From positions 124,001-188,000 of the forward strand of contig NW_021836292.1 of NCBI RefSeq assembly GCF_006345805.1: a stretch of 64,000 bases of DNA. The letters are read 5' to 3'. Made by a program: the position numbers and the translations under genes. The notes beneath the pieces were generated by a model. The model saw only the letters and a list, made by a program, of their open reading frames with translations, searched no databases and had not been told where the DNA came from. Origin of the DNA: Octopus sinensis. Its lineage: Eukaryota. The first letter of the stretch is position 1, and each line of letters begins with the position of its first letter. Below, in pieces: positions 28,531-62,549 of the stretch.

Positions 28531-28991
28531 AAGGAATTTTAAAAGCTATAATTAAGCACAACGCATTCAACACTCTTTTGGAGGGCTTTTGTTTGTTTTA
28601 CTTATGGTGATGTGCTTACAAATAATCCTGCACGCACATACACACACACACACACTTGTATACACCCCAAATTTACGATCACCCCAATATATAAACATGT
28701 ATATAGAAGCACTCCCAAACATATACACGAACACACACGTCATTCGTCAGTCAAGTGTGAAAAATGAATCGGATAGGTTTTAAATGACTGGTTAAACGTA
28801 TTACTTAGACTCGGGACAAGAATGTCCTTAGTCACACTTTAAATCTTCCCACTTTAAAGTGTGAAGGTTTCCGTGTTGGTTGTTGAGTGATAAATGTGAA
28901 ATTGTATGTCCGTGTCCGTGTGTGACTCTGTGTAGGTACGATTTTTTAATACATACATACATACATACATACATACATACATACATACATA

Positions 28992-30160
28992 GAGGAAATG
29001 TCTACACGGACGTTAAAACTCGTAACATCATGACATCAATTGGAAACATCCACAGATACAGTGACATTGACAGGTTCTATCTAAGAAGGACGTAGAGGTT
29101 TGAGCTTATTGCGGGAAGTCTCTCTCAGGCAGCACTTGCTAATCAACAGTCGAAAAAATAAGTACATATACTTAGTGCTGAAAGGCGAAAAGAACAACAT
29201 TCTATGTGTCGGAAGTGAGCTCTTTAGAAAGCACTCTCTTCCTTATGACTTCCCATCCAACCCCAAAACACCAGGAACAACGTACTTAGAAAAAAACTGG
29301 ATCCGAAACGCACAGCATACCATAAGAAGACTCTGCGTAGGTATGTTTCCTGGAGGCTTGAACACAGTAATATCGACATGAAGCATAGCCTCTCTCTTGG
29401 ACTCGCGACCGCTGCACCACATCGCATTTCGAAGGCTATACATTTGCAATCCAAAAACAGAAGGTTGCAACGAGATAGCTATTGAACAAAAGAGACAGAG
29501 AAACCCTTGGAGCTCCAAGATGCAAGCGAAAATGTAGATTTTGTCATATTTCTGTAGAAGATATAACACATGTGATTAGCAGTACTATGTGACACGACGT
29601 TGTTGCAAAAACAATATACAATGTCATTCGGAAAAAAAAAACTGTCCTGGAATAAAAATAGTGAATCCCTTTGTTATTGAATACATACACTAACATCAAC
29701 ACAAGGAATACTGGTGGAATATTCACATCAAAAGATTTGTCGAGTGGTAAACAAGCCGGATATTGTTGTTTGAGACAGGTAAGAAAAAGTATGTACCGTC
29801 ATAGAGATTAGCTGTTCTGCAGATATGAATATTTCTTTCAAAATCAAAGAGAAAGCAGAAGATAACTATGGGCAACTGCTTCGAAACCTCCAGCTTCTAT
29901 ATCCAGATTATAAATACGCATTTATACCAATAACAATTGATGCACTTGGTTTTATTTAGTAACAATCAGAAAAATAAATCAGTCAACTAACTCGCACATT
30001 ACAAATACAATCTGTAAGTGAAACAGAAAAAAATATGCTAGACTCTTCTCAAGTTTAAAATGTGACTGTTTTTGTTATCTACACTCCAATGACGAACGCT
30101 TGTATCTTTGTTAGAAACCAGCCTCTTCCTCGAGGGAAGAATTCAAATAATTGAAAACAT
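28992..30160 (+). mobile_element. R4/Dong-like REL-endonuclease LINE, 3' part, degenerate, preceded by (CATA)n
   Basis: HRYSDIDRFYLRR, AIQ..E.ATRYL, CRFCH..VEDITHVIS, HDVVAKTIY, WWN, KPDIVV, IEISC, IPITIDALG; (CATA)n at 28952-28991. Confidence 0.8.
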
Positions 30161-31741
30161 ATATGTATTAGCTTAACAGTACTACCATAGACAGGGTAGT
30201 TAGATACAGCGTGTAGATATTGGTCTGATACATTTACATATTAATGATAGAGTACTATGTACTTCTACCACGGAAGATAAATTATATTAATGATTATGCC
30301 TTTGTGACTTCAGAATTCCCTGGCTAGGTTATAGTGAAGATTAGCGTGATTTGGTAACGTTATTAATATGGGGCTGTTGGAGTGGTATTAGCAGAAAAAT
30401 CGATGAGTTGATCTGCTAGAAACATTACTACAGGTTATCATAGAGTCCTTTAGTGGTTATTCAGGTGATGAAGAAGCTGGTGATGCCGCCCAGTTGGTAA
30501 CATTGTCATAATTAGTAGATGTCCTTCGGGAGGAAAATTTACGAGTTATTTATTCACTTGATGTTAACTGAGATTTTTCATATTCTGATATAATTAATGC
30601 TGTGTTTCTGCCAACATATAACAGATAACATATATCTTTAAGGAAATTGCATTATGCTAGTCTTATAATGAGTCATTTCCCTAAGGGTTTACTGCTATTC
30701 TTGTCTGTGTGTGGGTACATATATATATACATATATATATATATATATATAATATATATATATAATATATATATATATATATATATTATATATATATATA
30801 ATAATATATATATATATATATAATATATATATATATATATATATATATATTATATATATATATATATATATATATACATTATATATATATACATTATATA
30901 TATATATACATTATATATATATACATTATATATATATATACATACACATTTATACATTATATATATTTCTATTCATTATCTCTCTCTCTCTCAATATATA
31001 TATATATTGAGAGAGAGAGAGATAATGAATAGAAATATATATAATGTATAAATGTGTATGTATATATATATATATATATATATATATATATATATATAAT
31101 ATATATATATATATATATATAATGTATATATGTGTATATATATATATAATGTGTATATGTGTATATACATTATATATGAGTGTGTGCGCGCGTGTTCGTG
31201 CGTGTGTGTGTGTGTGTGTGTGTGTGTTTGTGTCTGTGTCTGTCAGTCTGTCTGTCTGTGTTGCACAAGAAGCTATCAATAATATATCTGGTAAAATACT
31301 CCAGTGATAGAACATATTAAATATAATCACCAACCTCTGCCGTATGCCAGACTAGTGCGATTTCTAAACCGAGGAAATCTGACGATTTTTTTCGCAAAAA
31401 TTTTAATAAGAAGCCTTATCTATACGAGCGAGAAAGTGGTTGAAATTTGTTTCAATTGGTTTTAGTTTGTTTAATAAACAGCTGACACGAAGTTCGATTC
31501 GAATAAAGGTATGTTTCCCCTTTTTCCATCCAAGTTGCATTTTACCTTATATATTTCATTCGCAATTAAACAGCTTCAAAAATTTTAAAAAAAACTTATT
31601 TTTCAAATTTCTGAATGCTCTTATCAAATCGAAGTAAAATTTATTAACCTTCTAACTTTTAAAGATAATATTCCATGATTGTATTCACTTTTCCCCGTCA
31701 ATAAGGGATTTTTCGCTGTTATTTATAAATTCGTTTGCATA

Positions 31742-33006
31742 CGAGGGGCGTTCAATGAGTAATGCCCCTGACCCACTTCCCATAGCAGGAGAGCAACGAC
31801 ACTTGGCACAGTTATTCCTACATAGGAACTACCCAGAGTTATGCATTTCTCCCATCGTTTGATACAGCTCTGGAGACCGTTTTTGTAGAAGACCCCAGCT
31901 TGGTCCTCCAACCACGACGTGACTTCAGAAATCAAGGCTGCATCATCTGGGAAACGCTTTCCTTTCAAAATCAACTTCATGGCTGGAAAGAGGTGAAAAT
32001 CAGAGGAGGAGTTCATAGCTGCACGCCTGTGCTTCTGATCTGGCGACAAGCGAGTTGTGGACCGGAGCGTTGTCTTGCAGGAGGAGGATGCCTTTGCTGA
32101 TCTTGCCCCGCCTCTTGATTTTGATAGCTTCTCTTAATTTCCTCAAAAGTGAAGCATAATAGGCTCCTGTAATTGTGGTACCCTTTGCCAGGAAATCTGT
32201 CATCACTACTCCGTCCTGGTCCCAGAAGACTGTGAGCATAACCTTGTCAGCGGAGGGCTGCACCCTTGCCTTCTTTGGAGGAGGTGAGTCACTGCATTGA
32301 CTGGGATTTGGTCTATGGATCATAGAGATGGACCCAGGTTTTATCCTGTGTGATCAGTCTTTTGAAAAATTTTGACTCATCTTCTTGGCACATCTCCAAA
32401 TTCATCCCCGAGCACTCAACGCGTTCTTGCTTCTGGAAAGGTGTGAGCAACCTGGAAATCCATCTGGCAGACACCTTTTGCATATGAAAATGGTCATGAA
32501 TGATAGTTTCCACAGACCCGGTACTAATCTTGACCTTATGGGCTATTTGGCGAATAGTTATGCGTTGACCTTCCAAAATGGCAGCCTCAACTTGACGGAC
32601 AGACGTCTCATCAACGGCAGAAGGGGGCGACCAGATCTGGGAGCTGTTTCCACAGAGTTCCGACTATGTTTGAATTCACAATGCCAGGTCATATGATGGG
32701 GCATCATCACCATAATGCCAAGGTCATATGATGGGGCATCATCACCATAAGTTACTTTCATTTCATCAAAAGTCTCCCGTGGTGTGCGTCCTTTCAAATA
32801 CAAAAACCAGATCACTGCTCGACACTCAACAGGCTCCATTTCACACTTGACTCAGTTCAAACACCTGTAAATCAGAAACCACAATTAGTTCAGAGCTGTA
32901 ATTCGCCACTTAATCTATAGAGGTATAAATAAGTGCACATGCAAAATTTCAGCTAGATCAAACAAATGCAAGTGGGTCAGAAGCATTACTTATTGAACGC
33001 CCCTCG
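31742..33006 (-). mobile_element. mariner (irritans-like), full length, defective
   Basis: TIR cgaggggcgttcaat.agtaatgcccctgaccc at both ends, TA duplication; HTH SGRP, QDKTWVHLYDP, QDNAPVH; frameshifts. Confidence 0.92.
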
Positions 33007-33074
33007 TAAAAGCAGCTTTTTTTTATTGCATTCATGCATATACATACATATATTCACACCTTTAAAAACAAGGA

Positions 33075-61164: not shown

Positions 61165-61380
61165 CCTTTCCGCTACAGGCACAAGGCCTGGAACTTCTAG
61201 GGAGAGGCTAGTCGATTACATCGACCCCAGTGCTCAATTGGCACTTATTTGATCTACCCCGAAAGGGATGTAAAGCAAAGTCGACCTCAGCGGAATTTGA
61301 ATTCAGAACGTTCAAATTCAGGAGAAATGCTGCTAAGCATCTAGTCCGGCGTGCAAACAATTATGCTAGCACGCCTACTT
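61165..61380 (-). mobile_element. SINE family B, alternative tail
   Basis: Same core; tail aatcctttccgctacaggcacaaggcc. Confidence 0.75.
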
Positions 61381-61565
61381 ATTCGCCCGTTATAATATAT
61401 AAAGAAATATATTTGTATTCAAGCAACCGTGTGTGTGTATGTTTATAAATGAAACACGAAAGTTTGAACAATGAAACTTACCTTGTTGAAAACAGCTTCA
61501 GTGGATCAGACGAAAACTTATAACAATCTCAAATTTATATTGAATATTTTGTGTAAACATTCAGT

Positions 61566-61726
61566 GTACGTACGTACGTATGTATGTATGTATGTATGTA
61601 TGTATGTATGTATGTATGTATGTATGTATGTATGTATGTATGTATGCATGCATGCATGCATGTATGTATGTATGTATGTATGTATGCATGCATGCATGTA
61701 TGTATGTATGTATGGATGTATGTATG
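61566..61726 (+). repeat. (TATG)n microsatellite
   Basis: Direct reading. Confidence 0.97.
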
Positions 61727-61956
61727 TCTCTTCTATTTTTTAAATTATTATAATCTTCCAGTGAGGAGGGAGCCGGTTTCCAACAAAGATACAAGGCTCC
61801 ATCTTTCGGATGTAGTTAACACAGACAAATTCACATTCGGAACTTGAGAAAAGTCTTGCATATTTTTACTATTCCTCTCACAGATTGGACTTGTAATGTA
61901 AGAATCAGCCGGTCAACTTCTCTCTCTGAAAATCCCAGTTTATCTAGATTCTCCTT
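61727..61956 (-). mobile_element. R4-like REL LINE extreme 3' fragment inside (TATG)n
   Basis: KENLDKLGFSEREVDRLILTLQVQSVRGIVKICKTFLKF; 3' UTR cttgtatctttgttggaaacc matches 30100-30150. Confidence 0.8.
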
Positions 61957-62549
61957 GTATGTATGTATGTATGTATGTATGTATGTATGTATGTATGTAT
62001 GTATTATGTATGTATGTATGTATGTATGTATGTATGTATGTATGTATGTATGTATGTATGTATGTATGTATGTATGTATGTATGTATGTATGTATGTATG
62101 TATGTATGTATGTATGTATGTATGTATGTATGTATGTATGTATGTATGTATGTATGTATGTATGTATGTATGTATGTATGTATGTATGTATGTATGTATG
62201 TATGTATGTATGTATGTATGTATGTATGTATGTATTATGTATGTATGTATGTATGTATGTATGTATGTATGTATGTATGTATGTATGTATGTATGTATGT
62301 ATGTATGTATGTATATGTATGTATGTATGTATGTATGTATGTATGTATGTATGTATGGTATGTATGTATGTATGTATGTATGTATGTATGTATGTATGTA
62401 TGTATGTATGTATGTATGTATGTATGTATGTATGTATGTATGTATGTATATGTATGTATGTATTATGTATGTATGTATGTATGTATGTATGTATGTATGT
62501 ATGCATGCATGCATGCATGCATGTATGTATGTATGTATGTATGTATGTA
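61957..62549 (+). repeat. ~600-bp (TATG)n microsatellite
   Basis: Direct reading. Confidence 0.98.

Follow-up and report, generated by a model that had tools for sequence, protein, structure and literature searches.

Does a retrotransposon lineage of the octopus choose a tetranucleotide repeat as its landing site? The question is raised by a stretch of 64,000 nucleotides from Octopus sinensis (contig NW_021836292.1, positions 124,001 to 188,000 of the forward strand; the whole stretch is called the window here), in which three fragments of a retrotransposon that lacks long terminal repeats (a non-LTR retrotransposon), c1, c2 and c3, lie beside (CATA)n, the repeat that reads (TATG)n on the other strand. 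The window is AT-rich eukaryotic DNA saturated with microsatellites. A sequence-only reading of it had taken the fragments for a long interspersed nuclear element (LINE) with a restriction-like endonuclease (RLE), similar to R4 and Dong and directed to (CATA)n. On the matter of targeting our analysis points the same way: with a probability of about 0.85, c1, c2 and c3 would be dead, 5'-truncated insertions of an RLE non-LTR lineage whose specific integration sites are (CATA)n/(TATG)n microsatellites.

Searching the window by tblastn with homologous proteins gave exactly three matches, at 29009-30031(+), 33043-33453(+) and 61950-61834(-), and in 3/3 the sense strand of the element reads CATA, as had been described. 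The longest copy, c1 (28992-30160, plus strand, 1,169 bp; tblastn and translation), is 5'-truncated and degenerate. It starts in the thumb of the reverse transcriptase (RT) (..KTRNIMTSIGNIHRYSDIDRFY..) and continues through a CCHC zinc knuckle and the RLE domain into a 95-nt 3' untranslated region (UTR); joining its frames gives a stitched reading of 255 aa with 10 stops in it. The zinc-knuckle remnant CRFCHISVEDITHVISS (29533-29590, plus strand) has lost its last Cys through a deletion when compared with C..C........H....C in the relatives P0001 and P0002. The RLE core NKPDIVV...TVIEISC...K..NYG...IPITIDALG lies at 29750-29960 (plus strand), and the motif residues N, P, D and I are invariant across our alignment A1. 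The original stop codon tga (30063-30065) and the 3' UTR occupy 30063-30160 on the plus strand, the UTR being 76% identical to that of c3. The second copy, c2 (~33043-33635, plus strand, ~593 bp), is also 5'-truncated and holds the RLE domain from ~aa 1013 of a 1151-aa relative, 4 internal stops, a stop codon at 33454-33456 and a 3' UTR of ~179 nt; by tblastn it is 55% identical to P0001 and 48% to P0183. The shortest, c3 (61728-61955, minus strand, 228 bp), consists of the last ~39 codons, a stop at 61833-61831 and a 103-nt 3' UTR, with 72% tblastn identity to residues 138-176 of P0001. The three copies share a common 3' UTR end and differ in their 5' truncation, beginning at ~aa 775, 1013 and 1113, respectively, of an ORF of ~1150 aa; such a pattern is a hallmark of target-primed reverse transcription. 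By blastn, the 3' end of c1 (29996-30160) is 76% identical to c3, and c1 is 66% identical to c2, so we regard them as old copies of related, non-identical subfamilies. Pfam found no match in the window fragments; the nuclease core N[KR]PDIV ... IE[IA]SC ... ALG is kept in c1 and c2, and the CCHC in c1. A mariner-like element lies just upstream of c2, at 31741-33009, with terminal inverted repeats tacgaggggcgttcaatgag.../...ttattgaacgcccctcgta, TA on both sides and a 35-bp internal tandem duplication (32680-32750). A continuation of c2 upstream of this insertion was considered and rejected, tblastn giving no homology at 31262-31740.

The immediate flanks of the copies carry the case within the window. 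At c1, a perfect array of 10.75 units (ATAC/CATA; 28949-28991, plus strand, 100% matches in Tandem Repeats Finder, TRF) is preceded by unique DNA and ends exactly at the 5' junction 28991/28992, ...(CATA)10 CATA|GAGGAAATG. Its 3' junction, at ~30160, reads ...ATTGAAAA|CATATATGTATT; the flank at this end, catatatgtatt (30161-30172, plus strand), is CATA-like, degenerate and weak. Of the short CATA remnants proposed for both ends of c2, the one at the 3' end is clear. Its 3' junction at ~33635, ...GAAAAAT|CATACACACACACATACATA, leads into CATA(CA)4 CATACATA (33634-33655, plus strand). The 5' side, catgcatatacatacatata (33027-33048, plus strand), coincides with an internal element motif, gaatacatacac, which codes for EYIHT and recurs in c1 (29683-29695) and in the external locus L001, and we therefore did not score it as a target remnant. 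It may be a remnant of the target, element sequence or microhomology, and would fit a microhomology-mediated 5' join. The clearest case is c3, which, as proposed for the fragment at 61727-61956, sits inside (TATG)n on both sides. It splits a single array of ~765 bp into 602 bp on its 5' side ((TGTA)152 on the plus strand, 61956-62557) and 163 bp on its 3' side ((TGTA)41 on the plus strand, 61565-61727), both of which read (CATA)n on the minus strand, the sense strand of the element: (CATA)n|AAGGAGAATC...AGAAGAGA|CATACATA. With A or CA as the last letters of the elements, junction boundaries can be set to within about ±2 nt. All three copies have the same orientation relative to CATA. A perfect (CATA)3 directly upstream is found for 0.62% of the (position, strand) pairs of the window, or 0.15% without the arrays that adjoin the copies, so that three clean junctions are far beyond chance (~1e-4 to 1e-6 if 7 nt of slack are allowed, 2e-7 to 3e-9 if none is).

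Relatives in other genomes allowed the same junctions to be read elsewhere. Queried with the stitched c1 protein, a word-indexed search returned only fragments; a profile search of a representative library of 1.8 billion proteins gave 5,878 relatives, several of them ~1,100-1,200 aa long, and the surrounding DNA was taken from ENA, JGI and NCBI assemblies. Relatives were found in a cephalopod, in a hydrozoan (Hydractinia) and in many other assemblies. Every external element of the lineage whose 3' end was located (12/12; L004, L006, L008, L009, L016, L017, L019 copies A and B, L020 elements 1 and 2, L024 and L025, from 10 loci in 9 assemblies) runs directly into sense-strand (CATA)n, which with the three window copies makes 15/15. 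Examples are L004 (..AAAAAAAAC|CATACATA..), L006 from Argonauta hians (..AAAGAGA|CATA(CA)n) and L024, where just 4.5 CATA units follow the element before unique DNA begins. Sense-strand (CATA)n was also found at 8-9 5' junctions. A lack of (CATA)n enrichment at 5' junctions had been named beforehand as what would refute targeting; the junctions do not refute it, and with repeats at both junctions of external copies the proposal of (CATA)n targeting is strongly supported. Full-length copies were recovered as well, among them L003, with (CATA)41 directly 5' and unique DNA before that. The short truncated copy L017 has (CATA)n on both sides. In L019 the 3' end of copy A is followed by (CATA)~40, then by copy B, which begins at aa 327 and continues to its 3' end, and finally by (CATA)58 and copy C, a full-length 5' end from a different family; L020 has a similar tandem with short repeats, in which the 5' ends of elements 1 and 2 adjoin (CATA)n and the repeat upstream of element 1 has unique DNA before it. 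The phase of the repeat is variable at 5' junctions and constant, R|CATA, at 3' junctions, which is what target-primed reverse transcription predicts. As a separate feature, a ~100-nt sequence (..gctacct..cttgaa..gttaagtcgtggtttagtt..) is repeated several times within the ~600-nt 3' UTR of L008 (3700-4100), ahead of the (CATA)n at its end.

Within the CATA families lies a nested sub-lineage (92% bootstrap, neighbor-joining, NJ) that uses a different repeat, (ACTT)n. Its member L021 (1837-5837), found in the sample that also yielded L003, is full length, 54% identical to P0183 and preceded by (ACTT)82. Two further members, L010 (4582-4629) and L011 (4134-4161), have (TTAC)n, again the (ACTT)n repeat, at their 3' ends. 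The existence of this nested group shows that the flank is a property of the element lineage and not of a genome-wide bias, and target use seems to have changed here from one tetranucleotide repeat to another, from CATA to ACTT. As a positive control, the full-length L005 (P0212, Ostrinia furnacalis) was found with (TAA)n on both sides, which is the Dong pattern.

The proteins confirm the earlier assignment to the LINEs with an RLE. Full-length relatives of ~1,150 aa consist of a conserved N-terminal domain, RT, CCHC and a PD..E nuclease; nearest to the window copies stand P0183, at 40-48% identity, and P0184. Because the window copies are truncated, the RT was judged on the full-length relatives P0183, P0184 and P0013, in which RVT_1 was matched at E 2e-25 to 3e-27. 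The best PDB matches of full-length relatives are R2 retrotransposon proteins, through the RT and the CCHC segment. The patterns C..C........H....C and N[KR]PDI[IV]..(x12-14)..IE occur in c1 and in all relatives, and c2 retains the nuclease core only. Exo_endo_phos, the apurinic/apyrimidinic (AP) endonuclease (APE) domain, had no match in the full-length relatives, and their predicted nuclease is the C-terminal RLE. The N-terminal ~70 aa are conserved as RRNRDYS..F.WT.ELN.DL...Y..A..DP..GYM.R.K.LWD..HPE.....K.LRQQA, with no Cys/His pattern (P0183 aa 1-85, corresponding to L003 4844-5100, and homologues). AlphaFold, run on a 15-sequence alignment, predicted a three-helix unit with a mean predicted local distance difference test score of 81 and a core above 90. 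Pfam had no match for this domain, and a PDB fold search with the model gave nothing better than E = 4.5 and lent no support to a Myb-like identity. With its basic RRNRDY arm the three-helix domain is a candidate reader of the target. An Rfam search of the L003 5' UTR for an R2-style ribozyme of the hepatitis delta virus type gave only sub-threshold microsatellite artefacts.

Several observations weigh against specific integration into (CATA)n or against the clade placement. The 3' flank of c1 is degenerate and the 5' flank of c2 ambiguous; five metagenome loci of the lineage (L007 and L012-L015), whose 3' ends were not located, have no microsatellite in the 134-930 nt downstream of the ORF; L002, which encodes the relative P0003, ends in (CA)n (1277-1293); and no empty site was seen. 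The NJ trees on which the clade placement rests have a weak backbone, with 30-57% support. The external loci are for the most part short contigs; assembly often breaks off at a microsatellite, and contigs that end in a repeat are thereby enriched, though such a bias leaves unexplained why the repeat is always CATA and always in the same orientation. A similar objection can be raised to the window itself, which is extremely microsatellite-rich (113 TRF rows, 27 perfect CATA arrays of at least 12 nt), so that the association might have come about by chance or as a side effect of the genome's saturation with tetranucleotide repeats. We consider this highly improbable, given how rarely three perfect junctions would arise together even with 7 nt of slack, the identical orientation of all three copies, and the recurrence of the same repeat in the same orientation in unrelated assemblies; moreover, the (GATA)n arrays in the window flank a different type of LINE and never the CATA lineage. 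A more specific alternative makes (CATA)n a 3' tail of the element, templated by its RNA or produced by RT slippage, with the upstream repeats being tails of older copies or later expansions. LINEs with such tails exist, the I factor with its (TAA)n being one. Elements arranged head to tail and separated only by (CATA)n in L019 and L020 would suit a tail, as would the varying length of the repeat after the element, from 4.5 units (L024) to more than 58. A tail, however, does not account for upstream repeats that are preceded by unique DNA and not by the 3' UTR of another element, as at c1, L003 and L020 element 1, nor for c3 within its 765-bp array, most of it (602 bp) on the 5' side, nor for a short truncated copy such as L017 with the repeat on both sides, and we judge it improbable. 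The two ideas are compatible to the extent that tails may seed new targets.

Where the lineage belongs among the RLE LINEs is a separate matter, on which the evidence is more divided. We built an NJ tree from 327 RT columns, rooted on R2 and APE LINEs and holding no HERO, NeSL, CRE, Togen or Rex6 sequences. It joined the CATA, ACTT and P0013 families in one clade (95% support), with a large group including P0212 as sister and the group with P0242 deeper, on the weak backbone already mentioned. An NJ tree of the C-terminal domain, whose support is too low overall to place c1 and c2, shows only c1 with P0001 (75%). Over the whole protein, the CATA lineage scored 377 bits against P0212 from Ostrinia (28% identity over 93% of the length), its nearest identifiable relative, 199 bits against P0242 (23% identity) and ~100 bits against R2. 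The only reference text for R4, HERO and NeSL was a single 25-aa block of the thumb (PMC7650587). The P0212 block, IIKWTKTELNSIQRIINTTLTKHRKHH, scored 85 against that of Repbase R4_Hmel (INWSQTDLN-LQRIINTH-MTTHRKH), an element listed under the R4 clade (PMC7650587), and at most 16 against every HERO, NeSL and R2 block. For the CATA lineage itself the block does not discriminate: of 6 members, 3 score best with R4_Hmel and 1-2 with HERO. The lineage is flanked by (CATA)n, and the (TAA)n insertion that characterizes Dong was found only at the distant Ostrinia relative; the N-terminal AP endonuclease of Waldo and the R1 clade is likewise absent from the full-length relatives. The targeting might then be real and the lineage nonetheless lie outside R4/Dong, with HERO, near Togen/NeSL or as a separate clade of the R2 group. 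The make-up of the trees, which held no full-length HERO, NeSL, Togen or Rex6 references, the behavior of the thumb block, the separation of the 95% clade from the group with the R4_Hmel-like anchor, and the microsatellite-specific HERO families and (TG)n-specific Togen on record (PMC4640811) all leave room for this. The descending similarity from P0212 through P0242 to R2 is, on the other hand, that expected for an R4/Dong element, the rooted tree makes the lineage sister to the P0212 group, and in Octopus vulgaris Dong-R4 LINEs, which are abundant and recently active (5 families, 1,129 recent insertions, no target mentioned), far exceed Hero with its 13 recent insertions (PMC13282606). We therefore hold a position outside R4/Dong to be doubtful. 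The earlier label "R4/Dong-like" stands insofar as the nearest identifiable relative is R4_Hmel-like and flanked by (TAA)n; as a placement it is plausible and unproven. R4/Dong is our best guess from these sequence comparisons, and a reasonably probable one, with the Dong branch of the R4 clade as the most likely position.

If the lineage integrates into (CATA)n in the way established for R2, in which a bound protein nicks its target and the end primes reverse transcription, the steps would be as follows. The protein would bind the (CATA)n repeat and its RLE would nick the (TATG)n strand. From the 3'-OH so freed, cDNA would be copied off the 3' UTR of the element's RNA (target-primed reverse transcription). 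A primer ending in ...TATG-3' would follow from the junction, which is always R|CATA. The truncated 5' ends and their variable repeat phase would arise where cDNA synthesis stops early or where the upstream repeat offers microhomology. The mechanism is presumably the same as that of R2 because RT, CCHC and RLE stand in the same order in both, and the R2 proteins are also the closest solved structures; R2 differs in targeting 28S rDNA, which it reads with an N-terminal zinc finger and Myb, whereas the N-terminus of the CATA lineage is a Cys/His-free three-helix unit.

Among known systems, Dong of Bombyx mori and R4_Hmel are most alike, with a single ORF, RT followed by CCHC and RLE, and one orientation within a simple repeat that lies on both sides. 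Their target is (TAA)n instead of (CATA)n, however, the proteins are only ~28% identical, and the CATA lineage forms its own 95% clade; the conserved RRNRDY..W..LWD..HPE domain at its N-terminus may be a further difference. R4, found in nematode 28S rDNA, shares the RLE-LINE architecture and a strict target specificity, but its target is a gene and not a microsatellite, and its probable representative P0242 is 23% identical. With Waldo, an APE-type LINE of the R1 clade in insects, the likeness lies in target-primed reverse transcription and in nearly the same repeat: Waldo reportedly inserts in (ACAY)n, of which (ACAT)n is one case. The (CATA)n repeat is thus not unprecedented as a LINE target. 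Waldo, whose AP-type endonuclease is N-terminal, is a member of another group of LINEs, so a shared target would be convergence, not relatedness. The earlier statement that no (CATA)n target was known accordingly holds for RLE LINEs in the literature searched, and has to yield for LINEs at large if what is said of Waldo is right. Full-text literature searches, whose scope was published papers, found none naming a (CATA)n-specific RLE LINE. HERO families of the leech and Togen of fish, specific for (TG)n, are R2-group RLE LINEs that insert into microsatellites (PMC4640811); the repeats are others, and they were compared by description only. RLE LINEs are mostly target-specific, with Dong and some HERO families in microsatellites and Togen in (TG)n (PMC4640811, PMC3636483). 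What the CATA lineage adds to this known kind of element, the microsatellite-specific RLE LINEs, is the target repeat (CATA)n.

Target-specific LINEs show how a mobile element multiplies without hitting genes, and R2-type proteins are under development for inserting genes site-specifically (PMC13580325). The choice of (CATA)n or (ACTT)n by close relatives, with identities of up to 54%, offers a tractable system for locating the part of the protein that reads the target. Dong-R4 LINEs are common to coleoids, with no target mentioned (PMC8967140); if the lineage is among the octopus "Dong-R4" elements, as seems likely, these would gain a target property. The lineage may also account for some of the tetranucleotide repeats that mark cephalopod genomes. 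Further interest comes from the breadth of the lineage, the change from CATA to ACTT, the uncharacterized N-terminal domain and the coexistence with a (GATA)n specialist of the Tx1 type in one 64-kb window. A wider picture, which we put forward only tentatively, is that of an old and widespread animal clade of RLE LINEs whose ancestral target was (CATA)n, read by the undescribed three-helix domain, with at least one switch to (ACTT)n. In cephalopod-type genomes this clade would share the tetranucleotide repeats with the Tx1-type (GATA)n specialist, and its repeat tails may help to create and spread arrays.

The sequence-only reading had set the CATA lineage beside a "Tx1-GATA" family as a second system, and the window does hold LINEs of the L1/Tx1 type (APE, RT and zf-RVT) bounded by (GATA)n-type arrays, all on the minus strand (47674-57269 and 3364-6620). 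One has a 1071-aa ORF at 48281-51496 and, upstream of it, an ORF at 51690-52931; its flanking arrays are (AGAT)25 at 54021-54121 and (TAGA)29 at 47674-47789. That (AGAT)25 is also where a second copy (55157-57157) ends, and a third (4434-6620) lies between (GATA)90 at 3364-3720 and (AGAT)25 at 6412-6512.

Other observations concern neighboring or distant sequences. In Bursaphelenchus xylophilus (CAJFCV020000005.1, 46.5-69 kb; L022/L023), the RLE LINE P0242 recurs about every 6.3 kb, and behind each copy come the 3' part of the large subunit rRNA, starting at model position 2389, then a spacer and no more than the first 346 nt of the small subunit rRNA, before the next copy begins. This is an odd rDNA-derived tandem array, and P0242 is probably an R4-type element. 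Within the window, a separate mariner transposase ORF lies at 41958-42626(+), and at ~30950-31045 a long perfect palindrome is found within an AT microsatellite (..ttctattcattatctctctctctctcaatatatatatatattgagagagagagagataatgaatagaa..). A 184-bp unit (TATTTCTTTACTGCCCACAAGGGGCTAAACACAGAGAGG...), present in two tandem copies with 93% identity (60732-61097) some 470 bp ahead of the array that holds c3, (TGTA)n, may be a repeat resembling a short interspersed nuclear element (SINE).

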